Notes: generated by a model not told the origin, from the sequence alone. A stretch of DNA of 64,000 nt from Adineta vaga (GCA_021613535.1 CP075494.1:6262001-6326000), one strand, 5' to 3'; positions 12,385-38,597 are shown, counted from the stretch's first letter. Numbers and translations: made by a program.

Positions 12385-14099
12385 TTAATTCATTGCTGCA
12401 TCATCTGATAAATCGCCTTCGTCCATCATCATATTGCCTTGACCAGTTGGAACAAAATGTCGACGAGAAACATTCATAGTATTATTATTATTATTTGGTG
12501 AACGAGTTGACGATGATATTGAATCATCCTTTACACAAAGATTTACTTTGATTATTGCTGAACGAAGTAAAAGTGCACGTGTAATTTTTTCCGATTGTTT
12601 CGTTATTGCTAATGCATGTTGATATGCATGCCAACGTTGATCTGTATCAGCAACGTATAAAATTTTATTTTTCGAATCAATTCGTGCTTTAATTTTGCCT
12701 GAACGTATCAAACTAACAAGTTCATCTTCGAGAACATCGATCGTTGTATTCAATTGATTGGCCATTGTTGTCATACTTGCATTTTTATAAGGAAGAAAAT
12801 AAGTTATAATAATTCGATGACGAATTTCATAATATAAAGTACGTAAATGTGGTACAAGATATTGATCTAATGCTAAAATTGATTCGATTTGAGACATTAA
12901 TGCTAAACATGTTGAATAGGATGTTTCATAAAATTTCAAAAGAATATCTCGAACAGATGGTTCTAATTCCAAATATTGTTTCATATTGGGTGACATGATT
13001 ATTAAACGATGTAATTCAGATCTTTCAAATGTTGCTAAACTACATAGACAAACATATTGAATGAGTGTCTGAGGTGAGATAAGATCTTGAAAATGATTTG
13101 AACAATGTTCAAATGAAACGCCGAGAAAATGTCGTGCAGCTAATTTATATCTCTTTGTTGCTAATTCAGCAATACCAGCATAAACTTTCAAACGTGATCC
13201 TAAGATTGCATCTGATGCAATCGTTGCATTTGTTGTTGAAACATCCATTGGATTCATAACTGATGCTGTTGTTGTCGATGGTGTTGTTGTTGCTGTTGAT
13301 GATGATGATGATGATGATGATTTAGTTGTTGATTCTAAACTTTCAATTGCTTGTTCAGCTTTGCTAACATATGATAAAACATTCGACCAATTTTGCATAT
13401 AAAATGATGCTTTAATAACATTCATACACATCGTTATCATATGTCGTGGCGTAACACAATAATCTCTCGAACGTACATAACAACGAATAGCATTGAAGAA
13501 ATCTCCTGCATCTAAATAATGATCACCAAGATCATCATGACCACGACGTATAGAATCTTTGATTGAATTCGTACGAAAATTTCTCAAATCAGTATCAAGT
13601 TTTTCTAATTTTTGAGTATAACCACGTTGAGTTTTTTCATACCAAGTTGAATCCAAATCATTTGGTAATGGAATATTTTGTTTTTTCATTTCATCCAAAA
13701 CCTTTAATTTTTTTTCAAAACAAAAATAATAAAGATTAAATCAAATTTTTCTTTTATGAATATCTTTACCTGTTTATAAAGTGAAGTAAAATGTGTTTCT
13801 TGAATATATTTTAAACTTGTTAAAAGTGCTTCATTGTGTAATGCTGGACAATGATCTGCAATATATAATAAACGATAAATACGCATAAGACCTGTATAAG
13901 ATGATGTTATTGTATCAAGTTCAAAACCAGTCGAAGAGATATTAACTTGATAATTGCCTTCATATGTTGATGTTGTAGAATTTCCATTTGTATGTTGCAT
14001 GGAAAGATTATTATTTGTATCACCACTACTGCTAACGATATTTTGAATATCCATTTGTTGATTGTGAGCGCTACCTTCGAAATTTCTTGACAAATTCAT
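12385..14099 (-). CDS. GPS1: COP9 signalosome subunit 1 (exons 14099-13770, 13701-12385)
   Basis: LEKLDTDLRNFRTNSIKDSIRRGHDDLGDHYLDAGD; PCI domain with LIRSGKIKARIDSKNKIL. Confidence 0.95.
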
Positions 14100-14500
14100 G
14101 TCTAAAATAGATATTATATAAATACAATGAAAGATAAATAAATTAACATCGTTTTCCACGATTTTAAACTTTGTGTTTTCTATAGATATAAACCAATCGT
14201 TATTCGGATATGATCAAAATGGTCTTTTTAGTATTAGAGATGAAAATACATTGTTGAATACACATCTTTTATATTAAGAAAATCAGTATCAGTTTCTTTC
14301 TATTGATATTTAGTTTTATGTGTGACGAAGGATAAAAGAAGACCATTGATTCGTTATTCTATAGAACCAATCGAATCATTTTCACTAAATAAACATTATA
14401 TGTCCAGAATGGGAGAAAAAATGTAATAAAATATTGAATTTTGTAAGCTTATAATCAAAATAATATCTACATTCTATATAAAATATTCATCCGTCCAACT

Positions 14501-16082
14501 ATGTCGAATTTTAATGATCATCGATTTCGTTCGCAACATCAAAATGATCAACATGCATGGAGAACGCCTCAGAACCAACAAAATTCCAATTGGAATCCTC
14601 ATGTCCGTAATGAACAAAACAATGAAATAGATCAACAATCTCCTCTTCCATTACTTGTTCCATCATTCCTACCAAATGCATCGACACCACAAGGATCTCA
14701 TAAATATCCGTTGAACCAACCTCGTAAATATCTGTTTCATATTGTATATAACAATGTTTTTAAAATCTTTCAGTTGAGAAACATTTATCTTATCGAACAT
14801 GGTCTAATACCACTTATCGAGAATATTTTCGTCGAAATCATCAAAATCATTTTAAATTTTCTGTTGTTTGTTACAATATTTTGTCACAAAGTTTATTAGA
14901 AGATAATGTATATTTATACGGAACTTGTTCGGAAAAAAATCTGAAATGGTATCGAAGAAGAGATCGATTATTTCGAGAAATATTACGCCAAGATGCTGAT
15001 GTAAGTTCACATTCTTCTATGTTTTTCCTCGGGCAAATAAATCATTCTAGATTCTTTGTTTACAAGAAATGCAAAATAATCATTATGAAAATGAATTTCG
15101 ACCAACATTAGCACAACAGGGTCAGGAGGAAATACTGTTGCTTTATACCCAACCATTTGATATGTTTCTCTTCAGGATATGATTCTATTTATTTAAAACG
15201 TAATGGTTATAAACCAGATGGATGTTGTTTATTCTACAGAAGAAATCGTTTAAAACTCGTAGATAGTAAACTTGTATCATTCTTTCGAAATAACATTCCA
15301 GTATTAAACAGGTAAATTGATATGAATACTTTTTTTTAAAATGATATCATCGTTTTTCTTTTGATTTTAGAGATAATTGTGGTTTAATTGCATTGTTTCA
15401 ACCGTTGAATTCCAATGCAACTGAAGAAGATCTATTTTGTGTTGCTACAACTCATTTGTTATTTTCTCCAAAACGTGGTGATATTAAACTAGCTCAATTG
15501 CAGTATTTTCTTGCTGAAATCGATCAATTAGCATTAAAAAAGGAACAATCAAATTCCTACTATCCTATCGTTCTATGTGGCGATTTCAATGCTCAACCTG
15601 CATGTCCATTGGTTAATTTTGTACTCAGTGGGCATATTGAATACAATAATTACACTTCTCTAGAAATTTCCGGTCAGACACCAGATTCACCGACAGCAGG
15701 TCGTGTTTCTTATGCGTTATCATCTGAAGCACTTCTGCCATCATCATTTGTTACTTCTGATTGTCGTTTATCATCAGCTGAACATCGATCTTTATCCAAC
15801 AATGCAACTTCAACTGCTGTGTTAACGCATGATAAAAATTTCGCATCCGTTTATGATTCAAACGATTATTCTAGTGTTACATCAAATGTTGCAGATCATC
15901 CGAAAACAGTTGATTATATATTTTATACTGAACAGGAAGATGACCCATATCGATTGAATCTCTTAAGTCGTTTTGATTTATATAAAGATTATCAAATGCT
16001 TGACGTTCATGTACCGAATCATCAATTTCCATCGGATCATTTTCTTTTAGGAGCTCAGTTTGCTTTAAAATTTAAAAAGTGA
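14501..16082 (+). CDS. ANGEL: Protein angel homolog (CCR4/EEP family 2',3'-cyclic phosphatase)
   Basis: Spliced motifs YNILSQSLLE, DADILCLQE, KPDGCCLFY, ATTHLLFSPKRGDIKLAQL, CGDFNA, TVDYIFY, PSDHF. Confidence 0.9.
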
Positions 16083-16215
16083 TATTTATTTTTTGATAAT
16101 TAAAAAAATAAAAACAGTGAATTCTAAAACATATTCATACTATCAATTCAAAAGCTTTGTTTTACAAATGAACAATACTCTTCTTTAGCAAAATAAACTT
16201 TTATTGCATTTTAGA

Positions 16216-19200
16216 ATGTTTTCTTTACGTCTTTCAATGTTATTTCGTCGGACACCATTTTGTCTAATTCGTTCATCACACACAACTCGTCTTGATCTTG
16301 ATCAGTTACTTGAACGACTCGATGGTGAAGCTCATCGTCGTGGTCGTTTAAATCCTGGTCTTGTTCGTGGTGCTATGCATAAAGCAGCTGTCGAATTGAA
16401 TACAATCAATTCTACACAAGCTCTCCTCCTCATTCGTTGTACGGGTTCATTATTAATTAGTGAATTACCACATCAACGGCAAGAAGTTCTCGATTATATG
16501 ATGAAAATTTTCAAACAAAAACATGTCACATTTGATGTTACACATTATAATTCATATATGCGTGTCTCACTTCAAAATAATCAGCTGTTTGATCCAGTGA
16601 AAATCTTACAGGAAATGAAAGAAAATCAAATCATTCCAAATTTAACGTCATTTCGATTATTAATCGAATGTTATGCGAAACAAGGACGATCAGATGATAT
16701 ACAAAAGATCTTGAGTGAAATGAAAATGGCCAAGTTCAATATTGAACCATTAACATTAACTCATTTGTTAAGTTCTTATGCTGAAAAAGGTGATGTTGAA
16801 CGATTGGAAAATTTATATAATCTTTTCAATGAATTAGAATTAAAACCAATATCTGAAACTTACGAACAATTTATAATTGGATATTTAAAACGAGGTAAAA
16901 TTGATCAAGCAAAAAGATATTTCGTAGAAAATGTATCAAAAATGGATAATGATTCATTATTTCGATTACTTGTCAAATCTGCTCAATGTCAACAGAAAGA
17001 TTTATTTGAAATAATCATTTCATCCATTGATAAAAATAGCTTAGCGGATATTTGTGTAAGTCGTAATCATATTACAGATATTCAAAGTATTCGAGAATTC
17101 TTTTGTTTTTTAGGTTCAATATATTCTCTGTGCAACAGAATTACTCGATGGTAATCTTGATGATTATGCTTTTCTTCTAATCGATTCATTTCCAAAACGT
17201 GATGAAACTCTTCGTTTCGATGTTATCAATTTAACTCTTTTAAATCTCTTGAAACTTCGTTTACCAACACATCATTTTCGTCCATTTTCCACTTTAACAC
17301 TCGATGATATTACACACAATTTCGATTGTAAGTCTTTTCATCTTTTTTTTCTTCATATTTGTTTTCATTTATGATCATCGATTTAGCTTCAAGGAACTAT
17401 CAATGTGAACGAGAATCTGTTACCGATGGTCAATTAAACAATTTTCGACAATTTGTTTTGAAACGAGCTGCAAATTTTAGTGAGAAAAAAGATCGATGGC
17501 TTTCTATTCATCAATTACTTTATCATGCGTATCAAAGTCATCTTCCTCTACGATATATCTATTCAATTCATGATCTCATGCGTCAACAGAATTATGCATA
17601 TCGTCCACATTATATTCGTCCGATGTTAATCAAACTTCAACGAATATTTGTCGGTAATACACAAGAAATGACGAATCAAACTAGTCAATTATTAGGTTAT
17701 TTACAAAAGAAATTTTCATTAAATTATGATTATGAAACGATCGAATGTATAATTAATCATTTCTTTGATCGATGTCATTTAAAACCATTAGATATTTCTC
17801 TTATTTTCAAAAAAGTAAATATAAATCTAAACAATATTTGGTCTAATCTTTATCTTTCCACTTTAAAACGAATCAATATTGATTTATTAACTTCCTTAAC
17901 AATATTTCTTCATTCAAATAAAACAATTCGATTTGATTATACACCGATCATTCGCGAACAAACAATACAAGCTTTACAATCGTTAATCAATCAATTGAGT
18001 GTGAATTATACGAAAAACAATTCGGAAGAGATATTTAATTCTTCAAAAACCATTATCGATTTTCTCGAAGTATTAAATACACGTTTTGTTCAAAATACTG
18101 ATGATATTATTCGATTAAATGATGGAATATTAATCAGTTTTCTTCAGGAATTTTTAGAAAAAGATCAAAAACAAAGTATTGATTTATTGAAAAAGATTCT
18201 TCAAGTTTTCGAACAACGTTCACTAACAATACCATTGACAAATGAAACGAAAGAAAAGATCTATCAACAATTAGGTATGAAATCGCTCAATGAAGTCAGT
18301 GATCAATTATTGCAAACACTCAAACGAGATCATATTTCCTCATCTATTTCGTCAGATAATCAATTAGCATTCGATGATAGTTGTGATGTTTATATAAAAT
18401 CAACTAAAACACCACGAAATTTTACGATACGTGAACTGGAAGATCATCTTTTAGAATTAAAACGTAAGAAAATGAATACAAGTGCAATTATTAGTAAATT
18501 ATTAACAAAATATTGTACGGAATGTTTGGATATTGAACGTACAATGAGTACACAAATACGAGAATCATATATGAAACGTATAAGTGAATTAGAAAGTAGT
18601 TATTTTGATAAACAACAAACAACGGGCTATCCATCATTGGGAGTAATTGCGAATTTAATCGATTATTGTAAGTTGAAATTTGTGACAAGATAAATTCAAT
18701 TTAATTCTTTCTTCTGTTTATTTCAGATTCACGAGTTGAACTTGATCTTGAGAAAGTGATTTATTATATAAATTTATCGAATGAAATCAGTCCAAAATTT
18801 AAATTAGATCCACATAAATCTATAAGTGTTGTTCGTTTATTAATACATCGACATTCGTTTACAAAAGCAATTGAATTATTGAATTCATTAGGACGATACG
18901 ATACTGTACCAAATTATATGTATCGTCGTGTTCGAGATTTATTACTTGATGCCTACGGAACACTTTCTTTCGATGAATTTCAAGAATTAGTCAATAAATT
19001 AATCGAATATAATTATGTAGATCCATCTTCAATTGTCCTTTCATTGATTGTACGAAAATCTTATCAAGAAAATGGACCCTTACAAGCATTCGAAACAATC
19101 AAAAGTCTTCTTGTTCGATATAATAATCTTGTTGGAATATTTCCAATTATTCGAAAATTACTTCGAGATGATTGTACCGAAGAATTAAAACAGGTACATA

Positions 19201-19864
19201 CTTAAAACAGATAAATGAACGATGATTATTCTAATCAGTTTTTTTCTTCTCTTATTAGGTGTTAATAGCAATTGGTAAAATTCGTTCGCGAACTTATGCA
19301 TATGAACAATTAGCATTTGCTTTAATTCATGAACGTCGTTTGGCTGAAGCAGTTAAAACTTGTCAAAATATAAGTCGTGCAACATTTGAAGAACATTGTC
19401 AACGTTATGTTCGAGAATTATTCACATTTCCAACAGATTTTCTTCATATTGATGAAGAAAATTTATCTTCCGATCATCCATTAATGAATGATATTGATGA
19501 AAGTCATCATGTTTTCGATATGAATACAATATCACTCGTTCATTTCATTGATTACATCGAACAATATCCATCGATTACTCGACATTTATCACTTGATACA
19601 CTATTCTATAGTTTATTTAAAGCTTATGAAAAAAGCAATCGTTTAGAAGAATTTAGTAAATTAATGCGTGAATATTCATCAAAATATACACCTTATTTAT
19701 CATCGAAAACCAAAGATGCCTTAAGTCAAGCAGGAATTACTTTAGCAATTAAATCTTTATCTTCACCTAAACAATCAACAAAACGTATTCATAAACATGA
19801 ACGATTCTTACACGATCATGATTATGAAGATGAATCTTCTTCCACACAACAAAGTTCTTTCTAA
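16216..19864 (+). CDS. LRPPRC: Mitochondrial leucine-rich PPR protein (LRPPRC/bsf), 5 exons
   Basis: MTS-like start MFSLRLSMLFRR; STQALLLIRCTGSL and FDVTHYNSYMRVSLQN; PPR repeats; long helical C-terminal part. Confidence 0.85.
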
Positions 19865-19918
19865 TAAATAGTTTTTCGTTTGTTTTCTAGATTATTCTAT
19901 CTCTTGTTCAGTTTGTGT

Positions 19919-21223
19919 ATGTTTGGATCTTGTCTTCGAAGTAAATCATATCGATTTATTCAAACTTTAACGAAACAAATTTCAACAATGACTGGCATTC
20001 AATTGAATACAATTCTTTCTCAATTCAAAGATTATGCTCCACTTTATCTTGCCGATCAATCATGGGATAATGTCGGCTTACTTGTTGAACCAACTGATGA
20101 TAATCCACTAGTACAAACTATATTCTTTACAAATGATTTAACTGAACCTGTTTTAGATGAAGCGATTGAAAAACAAGCACAATTAATTATCAGTTATCAT
20201 CCACCAATTTTCAGTTCATTGAAACGTTTAACACAAAATAATTGGAAAGAGAGAATTATTTTGAAATGTATTCGACATGGAATTGCAGTCTATTCACCAC
20301 ATACTTCATGGGATGCAGTTGAAAATGGAATAAATCAATGGCTTGTATCGGCATTTGGAACAAGTAATGAAGAATGAAATGTAAGAAAAACTATATATAC
20401 TTTTGTTTTTTGAAAGATGAACAAGATTATACATCACGTCCAATTCAACCTGTTAAACAAAATGATACACCATCGAAAAGTCAACAAATTGTAACAATAA
20501 CTCTACCAAAAGATGAGAAAACCGATTCAATTATGAACATAAAAGATGCGATGATTATCAATGAAATACCGTAAACTTTCTTTATCATGTCTATACATAG
20601 TTAAACGATTGTCTTATTTTCCTAGTTGTAATACATCGAATGGTCCAGCAGTACAACTTTCGATTGCTTGTTCTGCTCAAGCGATAAGTTCTATTATAGA
20701 TTTATATCAAAACGAAGATAATATACGTAAAACAATTCAAATTGTTGATGTTGAAAAAGTACTTCGAAGAAAAAGGATTGTTCTGATTAATATGACATTT
20801 TTCTTTTAGCCATTAGATTCTCGTCAAGGTTACGGTCGTTTAATCGCATTAAACGAATCTCGAACAATTCAACAAGTTGTCGATAATGTCAAAACTTTAA
20901 CTGGTCTTAAACATATTCGCCTGGCATTAGCAAATAAGAAAACAATTGATTCACCAATAAAAACCATTGCTGTTTGTGCTGGATCAGGTTCAAGTGTATT
21001 TTCTAGTGCACGTAATGCAGATATTCAATTGACTGGCGAACTTTCTCATCATGCAGTATTAGATGCAATACACCGTGGTACAACAGTGATTTTATGTGAT
21101 CATACAAATACAGAACGAGGATTCTTAAAAGTTATCAAAAATCGTTTTGAACAAATATGGAATTCTAATCAAGTGAATTTGATCATTTCAGAACGAGATA
21201 GAGATCCATTAGAAATTGTTTAA
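19919..21223 (+). CDS. NIF3L1: NIF3-like protein 1 (DUF34), 4 exons
   Basis: APLYLADQSWDNVGLLVEP, ISYHPPIF, YSPHTSWD, IAVCAGSGSSV, TGELSHH, HTNTERGFL, SERDRDPL. Confidence 0.95.
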
Positions 21224-21930
21224 CAGATGATTCATTTGAATTTTTATTGATAAAAAAGAAATAACATAATTGTTCCACTTGACAATTTCATAGTAGGTTG
21301 AAAAAGTAAATTGAATCAACTGCAATACCTTTGAATGACTGCGGAAAAAAGAATTCAAATTTCCTTTCTAAGAAATTGATATTCATTTATAGAAATGTCT
21401 ATACTAATGGGCAGACTGAATTTCTTGTATTATAATTGAAGAGTTTTAATATATCACCGTATGATTGCTTATGTCCTATAATTGTTTCATCCGATATTTC
21501 ACTCATCTTTCATTATTATTAATAATCATTTGAAGAAGATAAAATTAGATATCGTTTTTCACTTTCTAATTAGATTTTTCTTTACTAATTGATTATATCG
21601 TTCTCATATATTCTCACGAGTTGATTTACATTTCAATGCACATGTCAAAATCTTTCGATAAGAACCTTCTATTTCCGAGAAATATTATTGTCATCATCAA
21701 TATTTGTTCAGCGATGCATATTTATGACGAGATAGAAATAATTATTCTTGCTTCTCTACACACATTTTGATAATAAATATCATCAAACGTTATCAAATTC
21801 ATTTAAAAACAAAACCAACATAAATAGACAGCACATAGAGAAAGAGAGAGAAAGAGAGAAAGAGAAAGAAAAAACACCACCATGTCTTTCAATATCTCTT
21901 CAGAAAAAGAAAAACTCAAAATCGATCTTA

Positions 21931-24900
21931 TCACTTCGATTCTTCGATTTTTATCGATGGTTTCAACATTTGCCATTGGGCATTTAACGATTCACCAGAT
22001 AATACTGTTGACCAATAGACATTCTCTGGGCAAATTGATCCTTTCGACGTACCATTTACACTAGGACCAAATATAACCGAACCAAGTTGTTCCTTATAAG
22101 ATAATGATTCATGTACAAGACGTACTTCAACAATGACATCGGAGGCAATATCACGACGTAATTCAAAGACAAGTTCTTCATTAAATGTTGGGCAATCTGA
22201 TGTACGTTGTACACTTGTTTTTTTACGTTTAATTTTCTTTCCATTTCGATCATATAGAGTAACTTTTACACAAGCATCAGGATACGATTTCGTTTCAATT
22301 GATAATGGCCGAAGATTTTTTGCTTCAATGATGACAACAGATAATTTCGCAGCACTTTGTAGATAAGATAATGAGATCAGTAATTCACCTAAATCCGGAT
22401 CCTAAAAAAAAACACAAAAAAAATGATTGATTAAATGAAGAACAAATCTATCGAACATTTAGAATTGAATTGGAATCACATTCATCAAAGGATTTTTTCA
22501 TTCGACTTTGATCACTTTGGGATAATTCATTAAGATCATATTTAATAGTAGCTAAACGAATATCTTTATATAAAGGTTTCGTTGTGCTGATCTTATATAG
22601 AAGAATTTCAATTGCATGATAATTTAATTGTTCATATGATAATTCGAATTCATTCAATTGTTTTTTATCAAAGAAATAAGATGTTTGAAGACGTGTTAAA
22701 CGAACAATTTTCGTTTGAAATAAATTACGTTTTTCGGGTAATAATCGAAAACGACAATATATTGAAATAAATTCACCATTATTATTATTCATATATGCGT
22801 CACTTAGATGAAGATTTTCTAAAGATAATGTATCAATAAACACATGATCACTATCACGATCATATGTCATCGTTAGGCGAGATATTGGTCGAGTTAAATC
22901 ATCTTCAGGATTGGTATTTGAAGAAAAACTTCCTTTCTAAAAGCAATTGTTTTTTTTTCTGTTTGTTTTAGTAATGATCTATTTAAACTTACAGTAGCTG
23001 CTGAAGCATAGAGTGCTTGTTGTAATTCTTTGGGATCAATTGGATCGAACATTGATGGTCGACGTCCTCGCATTTGTAACGACATTCTTCTATCTAAATT
23101 AAAAGTTTTCTTTTTTCTGAAAGTTTTCTTTTTTGTTTTATACCAGTATTTGGTGATGTCGAATTATTTGACGGTATACTAACACGAGGTGATGTCGATG
23201 ATGGACCAACGGCAAATTGCGAGGGTGGTGTGCCTAGTAATAAAATAGGATAAATATCAATAAACATCGAAAAAATTATCTATCCGATTGAATATTGAAT
23301 GTCGATCAAATTTTATTAGTTCTGACAAGCAAACCGTTGATGGGCTTTTACTCATTGTTGTTCTTCGCTCTTTTTCGAACGAGGGCAATGACAAAAAAAA
23401 GAACGTTCATATATATATAGTAGTGCTGATCTTTATCAATATGTTTTTTTTTGCTCACAAGTTCTTTCTATTCACGCAAATAACGATAAATATATATATA
23501 TACATGACATTTGTCGATGAATAATCATGTCTCATTTGTAGAATTTTTTTCCTTCATCCTATCCGATTATGTTAATAAATACTCGAATCATTGCTGACAA
23601 GTCAACATCGAGTGATGATTTCCAAAGTTGTTGAATATTGATGTGAAACATGCGAATAAGTCTGACCTTATTCTACTATTTGAAATAGAAGTAACATTAA
23701 TAAGAAAATCCAACAAGTCAGTGAGCTTTTAATGCATTTCTTCTAATAAAAAAGAAAAGTACAATATAAACAATAAGTCAGTAGGCGGAAATCAAATCTA
23801 ACTTGTTGTTTCAGTATATTTTTAGAAGAGAGAAAAGGAAAAAAAGAAGTATTCATTTCACTCATTGTTAAAGACAATTACAAGGTACTTCTTTCTTTTT
23901 TTTTGTTCATCTTTGCTTTCTTTTAATTTTCTTAAGACTTTATTCAGTCAATTGTAATTTCCGCTTCTCTGATTTTGTATATGATCTATTTTTTGATGTA
24001 CAAAGATGTGTGAAATAGTTGTTATTCTTTTAAATTCTGTTGTTCGAGCATAAAAAATATTTGATGAGAAGAAATTTTTCTTTTTCTATAGATTAGATGA
24101 CATTTATAAAGAGAGAGAAAAACCAAACGAACAATCTTGATCTTTTCTTCTTTTGTTCAATTGACAAGAAGAAAGAAAAAAGTTTTTCTTAAGGGAAAAC
24201 CTAAAATATCTCTGACACATACCGGATGCCGATGAAATATTATTTAATGGACTAGGTAGATTAATCGAATTCGAAGGCGATAAATTGAGTGATGGAGACT
24301 GAATATCATGACGTGGTGATGGACAAGGTGAACCTATACTAGTACCTAGACTATGCACACTAGTATTATGATGAATTGAAGTTCCTGTTGTTGATGATAA
24401 AGATAGACGTTGTAATGGAAAGATTAATGCTTCTTCTAAGTTTTCATCAACTATTGCAGATCGATGTTTACGCTGATAATAATGAGTTGATGCATGAATA
24501 ATAAGAGGAGCACTAAGACGACGATTTACTGCTTTTGTCGTATTCGATGGTAATAAATTTACATTTGAATTTTCATTATGACAATGATCAATATGTATAG
24601 TTGTTTGTTTTGTTATTGCACGATATTGTGGACGCGGTGTGGGTGAACATGATCGACTTATACGAACATTGCTATGTCCTGAAGTTCGTTTTGGTATATA
24701 TGTTGGAGTTGGTGGTGGAATAATAACAATATTTTTTCGACCATCCGATACGATCGAAGATGAATTATCAACATCCGATGTCAATGAAGTAAATAAACGT
24801 CGAAAGAATGAACTTAATTTCGCCATAGTTATTTGTCAAACGATTGAATAAGGAATATTTATATTTACTCGATTTCCGGTTTTTTTCATCAAAATTATCT

Positions 24901-36989: not shown

Positions 36990-38597
36990 TTATGGTGATT
37001 TTTCACTTGTCTCTATGATTGTTTCAGCTGCTTTCTCATCACTGATTGGAACATATACTTCTACTTGTGTCGTTTCACTTTCACTTGTACTTTGTGTAGA
37101 ATACTTCGGACAATTTCTAAAACTTCGTCGAATAGATTGAGTACGTTGATTCGAACAACGTTGAATTGGTGGTGTTGAATATTTATATCCATGTTGTGTC
37201 GAAATATTTTCTAATATATACAGTTCATAATCATTCTTACTCAATTGATTTGGTAAAATTGAAAGCGTATTTGCATGTGGTCGAGCTGCTTGTTGAAGTT
37301 GAGGATGTGTATGTTTTAGTTTAGATTTCATTTTAGTTCTTATTGGTGATAATACACCATGAACATCATTTTCTGACTGAGTTTGTTCTTTTCGTTTATA
37401 CATCATAATATTTTCTTGACTTTCACGATGTAATGCCAATAAACTTCGACGAACAGTGGCAGGAATCAATCGAGGATCAAGTAATTGTTCATCGGGATTT
37501 TCTACATTAGTTTGTGTCATTTGTGGAACGGGTAGAGATATATTTCCATCAGAGAAACGATTGGATCGTAGACCAGCTGTTGGAACACATAAATGTTGAG
37601 TTGAACAACTTGTATCATACATTTGAGAAGCATTCCAAGATGAATGTAAACTATTTGGAATATATATATGTGGAATAGTAAGAGCTGTTGAATGACGTGT
37701 CATTTCTATAAAAAGAAGATAGAGATAATTACTAAATACAACTTAATAATTGAAGAATAAGATAAGAATATTGGTTTTCTTTTCGAAGATCATAATGAAT
37801 AGGTGATTATCTTTAGAAAAATATGAATAATTAACTTCCAGTTTTGAATAGAAATAGACTAGATGGGACAAATTTCTTCTTTACCTGATGGATGACTAGT
37901 TGATGCATTTCCATTGTATTGATATGATTCTCGGATAGTATTTGAATTCGATATTACATCTTCTTCAGCAGTTTCTTCATGTGTTGTTAAGGAAATATTA
38001 ATTGCTGAATGAAATCCTTTTGTTGTTGTTGAAAGAGGAATGGATGATAAAAGATCATCTCGACCAATAACCAAAGCTGAAACTGTTGATGGAATAGTTT
38101 TCATCGAATTTTTCGGTAAATATTGATGAACATAATGCATAGTTTTTAATTCTTCGGAAGTTATATTTGTATCAAGAAGAGTTGAATAACGTTTTTTCTT
38201 ATAGATTATAGAATCTTGTTCACGTTCAACAATTTTGATATCACCGATATTAACTGGATCTTTACGATCAACACAATAATGTACTTGAGTTTCTAGACGA
38301 CGAAGTGATTTATATTGATTAAGACAAAATCCAATTGCTGACAACCATACGGCCAAAACGAAGAGAATAAGTATTACTTCACTTAACATTATATCTGGAC
38401 CTGAACTAACGACGACTGTCGATGACACTGAAGTTTGATGTATGAGAAATTCAATCAAATGAACAAAATGAGAACTTACTCGGATTGGCAATGTCACCAA
38501 AACATCGACATATACTTGAATTTTCTGCTAGATTAGGTCGACTTCGTGTTAAATTTCCTAAAACTTGACATAGTTTTGCAATTGTCAATTGATTCAT
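36990..38597 (-). CDS. Single-pass membrane protein with FNDC4/5-like TM segment and long disordered cytoplasmic tail
   Basis: EVILILFVLAVWLSAIGFCLNQYKSLR TM; spliceable exons from the ATG at 38597 through ORFs 37859-38500 and 36990-37703. Confidence 0.6.

Follow-up and report, generated by a model that had tools for sequence, protein, structure and literature searches.

A candidate spliced leader-resolved cluster of ANGEL-like, LRPPRC-like and NIF3L1 genes in the bdelloid rotifer Adineta vaga

Organization of the gene cluster

We analyzed a 64,000-nt stretch of the Adineta vaga genome (GCA_021613535.1, CP075494.1:6262001-6326000), hereafter the window, which corresponds to C5:6262001-6326000 of the 100.8-Mb, six-contig assembly (G000). 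According to our exon models, three genes on the plus strand follow one another head to tail, encoding an ANGEL-like nuclease, an LRPPRC-like pentatricopeptide repeat (PPR) protein and NIF3L1. An earlier note, made from the sequence alone, had proposed that this block is an operon resolved by spliced leader (SL) trans-splicing. Our results favor a narrower version, to which we assign a probability of about 0.55, namely that at least PPR and NIF3L1 form a real SL-resolved dicistron with almost no intercistronic region. Two observations carry this reading: the PPR mRNA is SL trans-spliced at the AG at 16213-14, 1 nt before its AUG, and some transcripts from which PPR introns have been removed continue through a 54-bp spacer into NIF3L1. 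PPR and NIF3L1 appear to owe their 5′ ends to SL trans-splicing and not to a transcription start of their own.

Exon models were built from the sequence together with reading-frame checks, and protein and domain searches were run exon by exon. The stop-to-ATG spacers measured 133 bp between ANGEL and PPR (16083-16215) and 54 bp between PPR and NIF3L1 (19865-19918), and the NIF3L1 model was identical to the NCBI protein I4U23_023888 of Adineta vaga (P0241). The features of the locus, with positions counted from the first letter of the window, are as follows.

14397-16117, plus strand: mRNA of the ANGEL-like EEP nuclease/phosphatase, from RNA contigs
14501-16082, plus strand: ANGEL-like coding sequence, 455 aa, five exons (14501-14723, 14774-15000, 15051-15120, 15176-15311, 15371-16082)
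16083-16215, plus strand: spacer 1, 133 bp, with ATTAAA/AATAAA near 16099-16112 and RNA 3′ ends at 16114-16117
16213-16214, plus strand: PPR trans-splice acceptor AG (ttttAG), 1 nt before the ATG, from the SL-bearing X10 contig
16216-19864, plus strand: LRPPRC-like PPR coding sequence, 1135 aa, five exons (16216-17055, 17114-17327, 17387-18667, 18727-19193, 19259-19864)
19863-19868, plus strand: AATAAA overlapping the PPR TAA stop (19862-19864), followed by a T-rich tract
19865-19918, plus strand: spacer 2, 54 bp, spanned by a spliced contig of RNA run X14
19889-19890, plus strand: probable NIF3L1 trans-splice acceptor AG (ttctAG/ATT), from an X1 contig start computed from depth
19910-19911, plus strand: second candidate acceptor AG (ttcAG), from sequence only
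19919-21223, plus strand: NIF3L1 coding sequence, 381 aa, four exons (19919-20363, 20417-20570, 20626-20758, 20810-21223)
12385-14099, minus strand: CSN1-like gene, head to head with the ANGEL-like gene (Pfam RPN7, 8.6e-50; PCI, 1e-17)
14100-14396, no strand: divergent intergenic region, a putative bidirectional promoter, reaching to the 5′ limit of the ANGEL RNA contigs

The layout described in the earlier note was borne out by the sequence and the exon models: three same-strand genes with spacers of 133 and 54 bp, the overlap of AATAAA with the PPR stop, the T-rich tract, the ttctag and ttcag acceptors, the ttttag 1 nt before the LRPPRC-like ATG (AG at 16213-14) and, by its RPN7 and PCI domains, the head-to-head CSN1 neighbor. 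Scans of 13500-22500 for tRNAs and Rfam families gave no match, the spacers included.

Spliced leader on the PPR mRNA

Rotifers have been known to use SL trans-splicing since 2005. We aligned the assembled contigs of four sequencing runs to positions 14300-20299. All eight introns in this interval (four in ANGEL and four in PPR) are spliced out at GT..AG joints in the contigs of runs X1, X10 and X14, which marks these runs as RNA; X11 was taken as DNA.

The PPR contig of X10 begins at 16213 and is preceded by CTTACCAAG, which is the 3′ end of the rotifer SL. The PPR contig of X14 (record 17) also begins at 16213, with seven additional letters in front. As the SL itself ends in AG, a contig joined to it aligns from the acceptor AG onward. 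The published rotifer SL, GGCTTATTACAACTTACCAAGAG (PMC3795323, Table 1), agrees with the genomic SL exon, TGCTTATTACAACTTACCAAGAG followed by GT, for which we found 59 genomic matches on both strands at up to two mismatches; the one copy that was read (L002) ends in CTTACCAAGAG and continues with a GTAAAT donor. Within the 64-kb window, CTTACCAAGAG is absent even when one mismatch is allowed. Because SL letters stand before 16213 while the SL is missing from the window, the PPR mRNA must have received them in trans. The chance of a 9-nt match to the SL end is about 4e-6. The SL expected by the earlier note at both downstream genes was thus read at the PPR acceptor, in the letters of X10, but no SL letters were read at NIF3L1.

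The genomic SL RNA gene matches (L001-L006; e.g., C5:9884356-9925969 and C5:10912931-10934587) are clustered on C5 and C2, many of them as inverted pairs about 154 bp apart. Genomic SL variants exist, for example with A for C at position 10, and differ 5′ of the nine letters seen on the PPR mRNA. A scan of metagenome contigs for the SL 3′ end followed by ATT, 0-30 nt of any sequence and ATGTT returned mostly chance matches. Four bdelloid transcript contigs from the JGI24214-24217 metagenome series (L034, L039, L040 and L092) begin exactly with CTTACCAAGAG, and none of the four encodes ANGEL, PPR or NIF3L1; in L032 and L052, of the same project series, the pattern match is internal, as judged from its position only.

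Transcripts at the two spacers

RNA continuity was observed at the second spacer. Record 18 of X14, a contig of 2156 nt, covers 17785-20064 with both PPR introns removed and runs unbroken through the 54 bp into NIF3L1. The PPR contig of X1 ends at 19875, 7 nt past the AATAAA and about 15 nt before the acceptor at 19890. To locate further contig ends, we decomposed binned contig depths by arithmetic. In X1, the remainder of bins 19700-19899 after subtraction of the PPR contig was 11 nt at a depth of 159.3, the depth of the next bins, which places the start of the X1 NIF3L1 contig at 19889. This is the AG of ttctAG and the same signature as that of the PPR mRNA, so that NIF3L1 is probably trans-spliced at AG 19889-90, as judged from X1 contig depth. 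Two exon word searches for RNA-derived full-length NIF3L1 found only exon-sized open reading frames (ORFs) from DNA contigs, and a NIF3L1 profile search returned annotated proteins of A. vaga, A. ricciae, Rotaria and Didymodactylos and no transcript contigs.

Upstream, the ANGEL contigs begin at 14397 (X10) and 14428 (X1), 73-104 nt before the ATG, and their 3′ ends lie at 16114 and 16117. Their 5′ ends are colinear with the genome, no SL letters occur among those shown, and there is no AG near the ANGEL ATG. The 5′ untranslated region (UTR) contains an upstream ORF at 14400-14426 on the plus strand (eight codons, ATG to TAA), which is inside the X10 contig and outside the X1 contig. From the ANGEL RNA 3′ end to the PPR acceptor the distance is about 97 nt. 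In bins 16100-16299, the depths of X1, X10 and X14 are fully explained by the ANGEL and PPR contigs. The spacer-spanning RNA predicted by the earlier note was therefore found between PPR and NIF3L1, as one spliced contig in one of the three RNA runs, but between ANGEL and PPR in none of the three. Contigs from the DNA run and from the RNA runs match the window only beyond 14367, 14648, 18692 and 19472 and have long stretches of unrelated sequence ahead of these points; these edges may reflect haplotype or strain structural differences or short shared repeats.

Protein identities and mitochondrial features

The gene identities given in the earlier note were supported by Pfam and PDB matches. 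The last ANGEL exon contains Pfam Exo_endo_phos, and its best PDB match, over the full exon length, is human ANGEL2 (6rvz, 5.5e-25). Other EEP proteins in the PDB matched partially (CNOT6 at 7e-12, PDE12 at 3e-9, and nocturnin). Since the ANGEL2 match is full-length and stronger than those to CNOT6 and PDE12, we assign the protein to ANGEL within the CCR4-family EEP proteins. Exon 1 of the PPR gene matches Pfam PPR families and is colinear with residues 82-298 of human LRPPRC (3.2e-33), that is, over the N-terminal ~220 aa, whereas exons 3, 4 and 5 had no PDB sequence match; the label LRPPRC-like therefore rests on the N-terminal quarter. NIF3L1 carries both halves of DUF34_NIF3 (9.6e-35 at positions 2-118 in exon 1 and 3.5e-25 at positions 129-256 in exon 4), which make up a complete NIF3 domain interrupted by the insert characteristic of NIF3L1; its best full-length relatives bear the name NIF3-like protein 1. 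Relative to human LRPPRC, ANGEL2 and NIF3L1, the likeness thus lies in the N-terminal LRPPRC colinearity, the ANGEL2 best match and the full DUF34_NIF3, and the difference in the unmatched PPR exons 3-5 and in an ANGEL-like N-terminus that does not resemble a presequence.

In every bdelloid sequence examined, the PPR N-terminus is basic, with abundant Ser/Thr and no acidic residues, resembling a presequence. NIF3L1 has a conserved N-terminal extension of about 11-25 residues before MTG/MSG with the same composition, also presequence-like, in the bdelloids examined. The ANGEL N-terminus is polar and Q/N-rich, and the earlier remark that it does not look like a mitochondrial targeting sequence held. 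As far as sequence features can indicate, PPR and NIF3L1 could plausibly form a mitochondrial pair, and ANGEL does not seem to be clearly part of it.

Conservation among bdelloid rotifers

The PPR-NIF3L1 junction is tight in all of A. ricciae, Rotaria socialis, Rotaria sp. Silwood2 and five bdelloid contigs (L015-L019), with spacers of 31-96 bp. In A. ricciae (L143), the order is CSN1 on the minus strand, then ANGEL, PPR and NIF3L1, then a C2-domain gene on the minus strand, with spacers of 82 and 61 bp. Contig L015 holds the whole block with both flanking genes (63 and 96 bp), L019 holds CSN1 and the three genes (72 and 46 bp), and in L016 just the three genes are present (80 and 48 bp). Adjacent PPR and NIF3L1 genes were also found in L018 (31 bp), L017 (91 bp), Rotaria sp. 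Silwood2 (69 bp) and R. socialis (59 bp); in L018, just 20 nt separate the stop from the NIF3L1 acceptor AG. A pyrimidine tract with YAG/AT(T), from a few to 28 nt before the NIF3L1 ATG, was present at all 10 other bdelloid loci read, and the YAG 1 nt before the PPR ATG is kept in six other bdelloid loci. Rotaria sp. Silwood2 has an AG 5 nt before the NIF3L1 ATG, resembling the second candidate acceptor of A. vaga.

Tight spacing of ANGEL and PPR is confined to A. vaga, A. ricciae and contigs L015, L016 and L019; in the latter four loci the spacer is 63-82 bp, with AATAAA 20-45 nt before the acceptor. No ANGEL gene was found within 2.5 kb of PPR in Rotaria sp. Silwood2, where the PPR acceptor is kept. 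In Didymodactylos carnosus (L142, GCA_905249995.1; 2966-4102), ANGEL and NIF3L1 lie on the same strand 1133 bp apart with no PPR between them, and NIF3L1 keeps cAG/ATT 24 nt before its ATG. PPR was either inserted in the ancestor of Adineta and Rotaria or lost in Didymodactylos. The pattern fits a history of SL first and compaction later, in which the acceptors would predate the crowding of the genes. The synteny anticipated by the earlier note accordingly holds for PPR-NIF3L1, which is tight in Adineta and Rotaria, and is more restricted for ANGEL-PPR, given the wide gap in R. socialis and the missing intervening PPR in Didymodactylos.

An A. steineri copy (L014, GCA_905250045.1; 7908-8369) retains only the last ~20 PPR codons before NIF3L1. 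This copy has an intron of ~780 bp where A. vaga has 53 bp, and is perhaps decaying or rearranged.

Within the A. vaga genome, PPR and NIF3L1 are single copy, and ANGEL alone has an ohnologue (on C2, 61% identity). We had considered the ohnologous block as a natural replicate of the cluster, but this was ruled out by the single-copy state of PPR and NIF3L1 and by the different downstream neighbor of the ANGEL ohnologue. That neighbor (C2:13781687-13785418, L010, minus strand) is a SMUBP-2/IGHMBP2-like helicase gene ~110-140 bp downstream on the same strand; its exons encode AAA_11, the SMUBP-2 1B domain, AAA_12 and zf-AN1, and its ATG stands directly after tttatAG, an operon-like junction.

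To see how often such a layout occurs, we applied a crude scan to the 64-kb window, searching for a long-ORF stop followed within 200 nt by a long-ORF ATG. It recovered both junctions of the cluster and 13 further hits, of which three were examined; two of these three were introns within one alpha-2-macroglobulin gene. On this weak baseline, with 3 of 13 other hits examined, the tight same-strand layout looks uncommon in the window. At the scan hit at 37703 (36993-38527, minus strand), one ORF stops at 37859, and 155 nt further on come ctttttatagaa/ATG and a second ORF, of 237 aa; this arrangement may be a tight junction or an intron, and neither ORF of the pair had an informative Pfam match.

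Competing interpretations

The PPR-NIF3L1 dicistron has to be weighed against the possibility that these are independent compact genes, each with its own promoter located in the spacer or towards the 3′ end of the gene before it, and that the SL trims a short outron. Outron trimming by an SL is the situation of most SL1 genes in Caenorhabditis elegans. The bridging contig would then represent either a pre-mRNA that still has its outron or read-through from PPR that does not give rise to NIF3L1 mRNA. We hold this to be a real contender, though one that falls well short of an even chance. A number of observations speak for it and against the dicistron. Bridging of spacer 2 was seen in one of three RNA runs and bridging of spacer 1 in none, contigs cannot prove a single transcript, and the same bridging contig would arise if NIF3L1 had a promoter within the final PPR exon. 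The SL on NIF3L1 depends on a computed contig start, with SL letters read on PPR only, and the NIF3L1 contig of X10, if single, begins near 19907, which fits no acceptor. NIF3L1 contigs are also about 5-18 times deeper than those of PPR (159 vs 8.9 in X1, 112 vs ~10 in X10 and 161 vs 16-35 in X14), and although contig depth is a poor measure of expression, the difference hints at an internal promoter or at differing mRNA stability. An acceptor beside the ATG has been retained even at a distance of 1.1-1.6 kb from the upstream gene (PPR in Rotaria, NIF3L1 in Didymodactylos), so that such an acceptor alone is no mark of an operon, and one A. steineri copy lacking the PPR body still has NIF3L1. 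We also rejected conserved gene order as evidence for an operon, because the opposite-strand flanks, CSN1 and the C2-domain gene, are equally syntenic. Against independent genes stands the persistence of so short a PPR-NIF3L1 spacer across bdelloid families, down to the 20 nt between stop and acceptor in L018, since an independent promoter would need to lie within conserved coding sequence. The bridging contig, moreover, has lost both PPR introns and so begins, as assembled, at least 2 kb upstream of NIF3L1.

A sub-case of the dicistron reading is the full three-gene operon, driven by one promoter shared with CSN1 and resolved by polyadenylation and SL addition at both spacers. Its attractions are the two short spacers (133 and 54 bp), the classic nematode spacing of about 97 nt from ANGEL RNA end to PPR acceptor, the SL on the PPR mRNA, the 63-82 bp between ANGEL and PPR in A. 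ricciae, L015, L016 and L019, and the normal 5′ UTR of ANGEL, as expected of a first cistron. We nevertheless consider it unlikely. By depth arithmetic, no contig covers 16118-16212 in any of the three RNA runs, leaving spacer 1 uncrossed; ANGEL lies 1589 bp upstream of PPR in R. socialis and is not within 2.5 kb of it in Silwood2, the PPR acceptor being kept nonetheless; and contig depths are unequal, with a ratio of about 3 for ANGEL and PPR and of 5-18 for NIF3L1 and PPR. An assembly or annotation artefact, with mis-modelled exons of one gene or SL letters that are a chimeric contig end, is very improbable. Just nine SL letters were seen, in one contig, and Logan contigs can be chimeric, but the contig of a second run (X14 record 17) begins at the same nucleotide, the 9-nt match is improbable by chance, and NCBI carries the same gene models for A. 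vaga, A. ricciae and R. socialis. That the three genes are exons of one gene was rejected, as they belong to three distinct protein families, each with its own stop and start.

For the PPR-NIF3L1 dicistron that we favor, the following course can be proposed. The NIF3L1 mRNA would be cut from PPR read-through RNA, with cleavage and polyadenylation near 19875, ~10 nt past the AATAAA at the PPR stop, and the SL would be added at AG 19889-90, ~15 nt beyond the polyadenylation site. ANGEL, with its genome-encoded 5′ UTR beside the CSN1 divergent promoter region, is possibly the first cistron, because the ~97 nt from its RNA end to the PPR acceptor are C. elegans-like. Of the operon originally proposed, the SL on PPR, the RNA spanning PPR-NIF3L1 and the synteny are thus supported, while no RNA contig linked ANGEL to PPR and the single promoter is conjectural; the nematode-like layout attributed to the locus fits spacer 1 (~97 nt from RNA end to acceptor) but not spacer 2 (~15 nt).

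Comparison with known operons and implications

The PPR-NIF3L1 junction resembles the operons of Ciona and Oikopleura and the SL1-type operons of C. elegans in its poly(A) signal at the PPR stop and in the ~15 nt from RNA end to acceptor. Those operons have little or no intercistronic region and one SL class. Further likenesses are that the SL seen on the PPR mRNA is the general rotifer SL and that the genes are of a housekeeping nature. The A. vaga junction differs from them in that co-transcription in A. vaga is seen at the level of contigs and in one run, and that the SL on NIF3L1 is deduced from depth. The ANGEL-PPR junction, in turn, recalls the SL2-type operons of C. elegans (~100-nt intercistronic region, U-rich element, SL2) in its ~97 nt, its A/T-rich composition and the SL on the downstream gene, but no RNA was found across this spacer and the tight spacing is not kept in Rotaria; moreover, the nine SL letters seen on PPR cannot tell a specialised downstream SL. 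Nematode operons are enriched in mitochondrial and RNA-metabolism genes.

For Rotifera, the literature we searched reports SL trans-splicing but no operons (PMC7986045), and a 2025 paper names rotifers in passing among the lineages with trans-splicing and operonic transcription (PMC12460157). Our literature searches turned up no specific account of operons in bdelloids, Adineta or Brachionus. SL-resolved operons are thus a known kind of system, and the A. vaga case would be new in a phylum without a formally described operon. We tentatively suggest, as a possibility we would not yet favor, that bdelloids own true SL-resolved operons and that this locus is a promoter-sharing unit for mitochondrial RNA-metabolism proteins (LRPPRC-like and NIF3L1, possibly with ANGEL), whose PPR-NIF3L1 core with its near-zero spacer predates the split of Adinetidae and Philodinidae. 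If this is true, Rotifera joins the phyla with operons, which extends the patchy distribution of operons among animals, and the locus offers a datable example of the compaction of neighboring genes, with ANGEL and PPR 1.6 kb apart in Rotaria and 63-133 bp apart in Adineta. Being small and conserved, with two of its three genes in single copy, it is a convenient test case in A. vaga. Proof of a rotifer operon would also inform the question of whether SL trans-splicing precedes operon formation.

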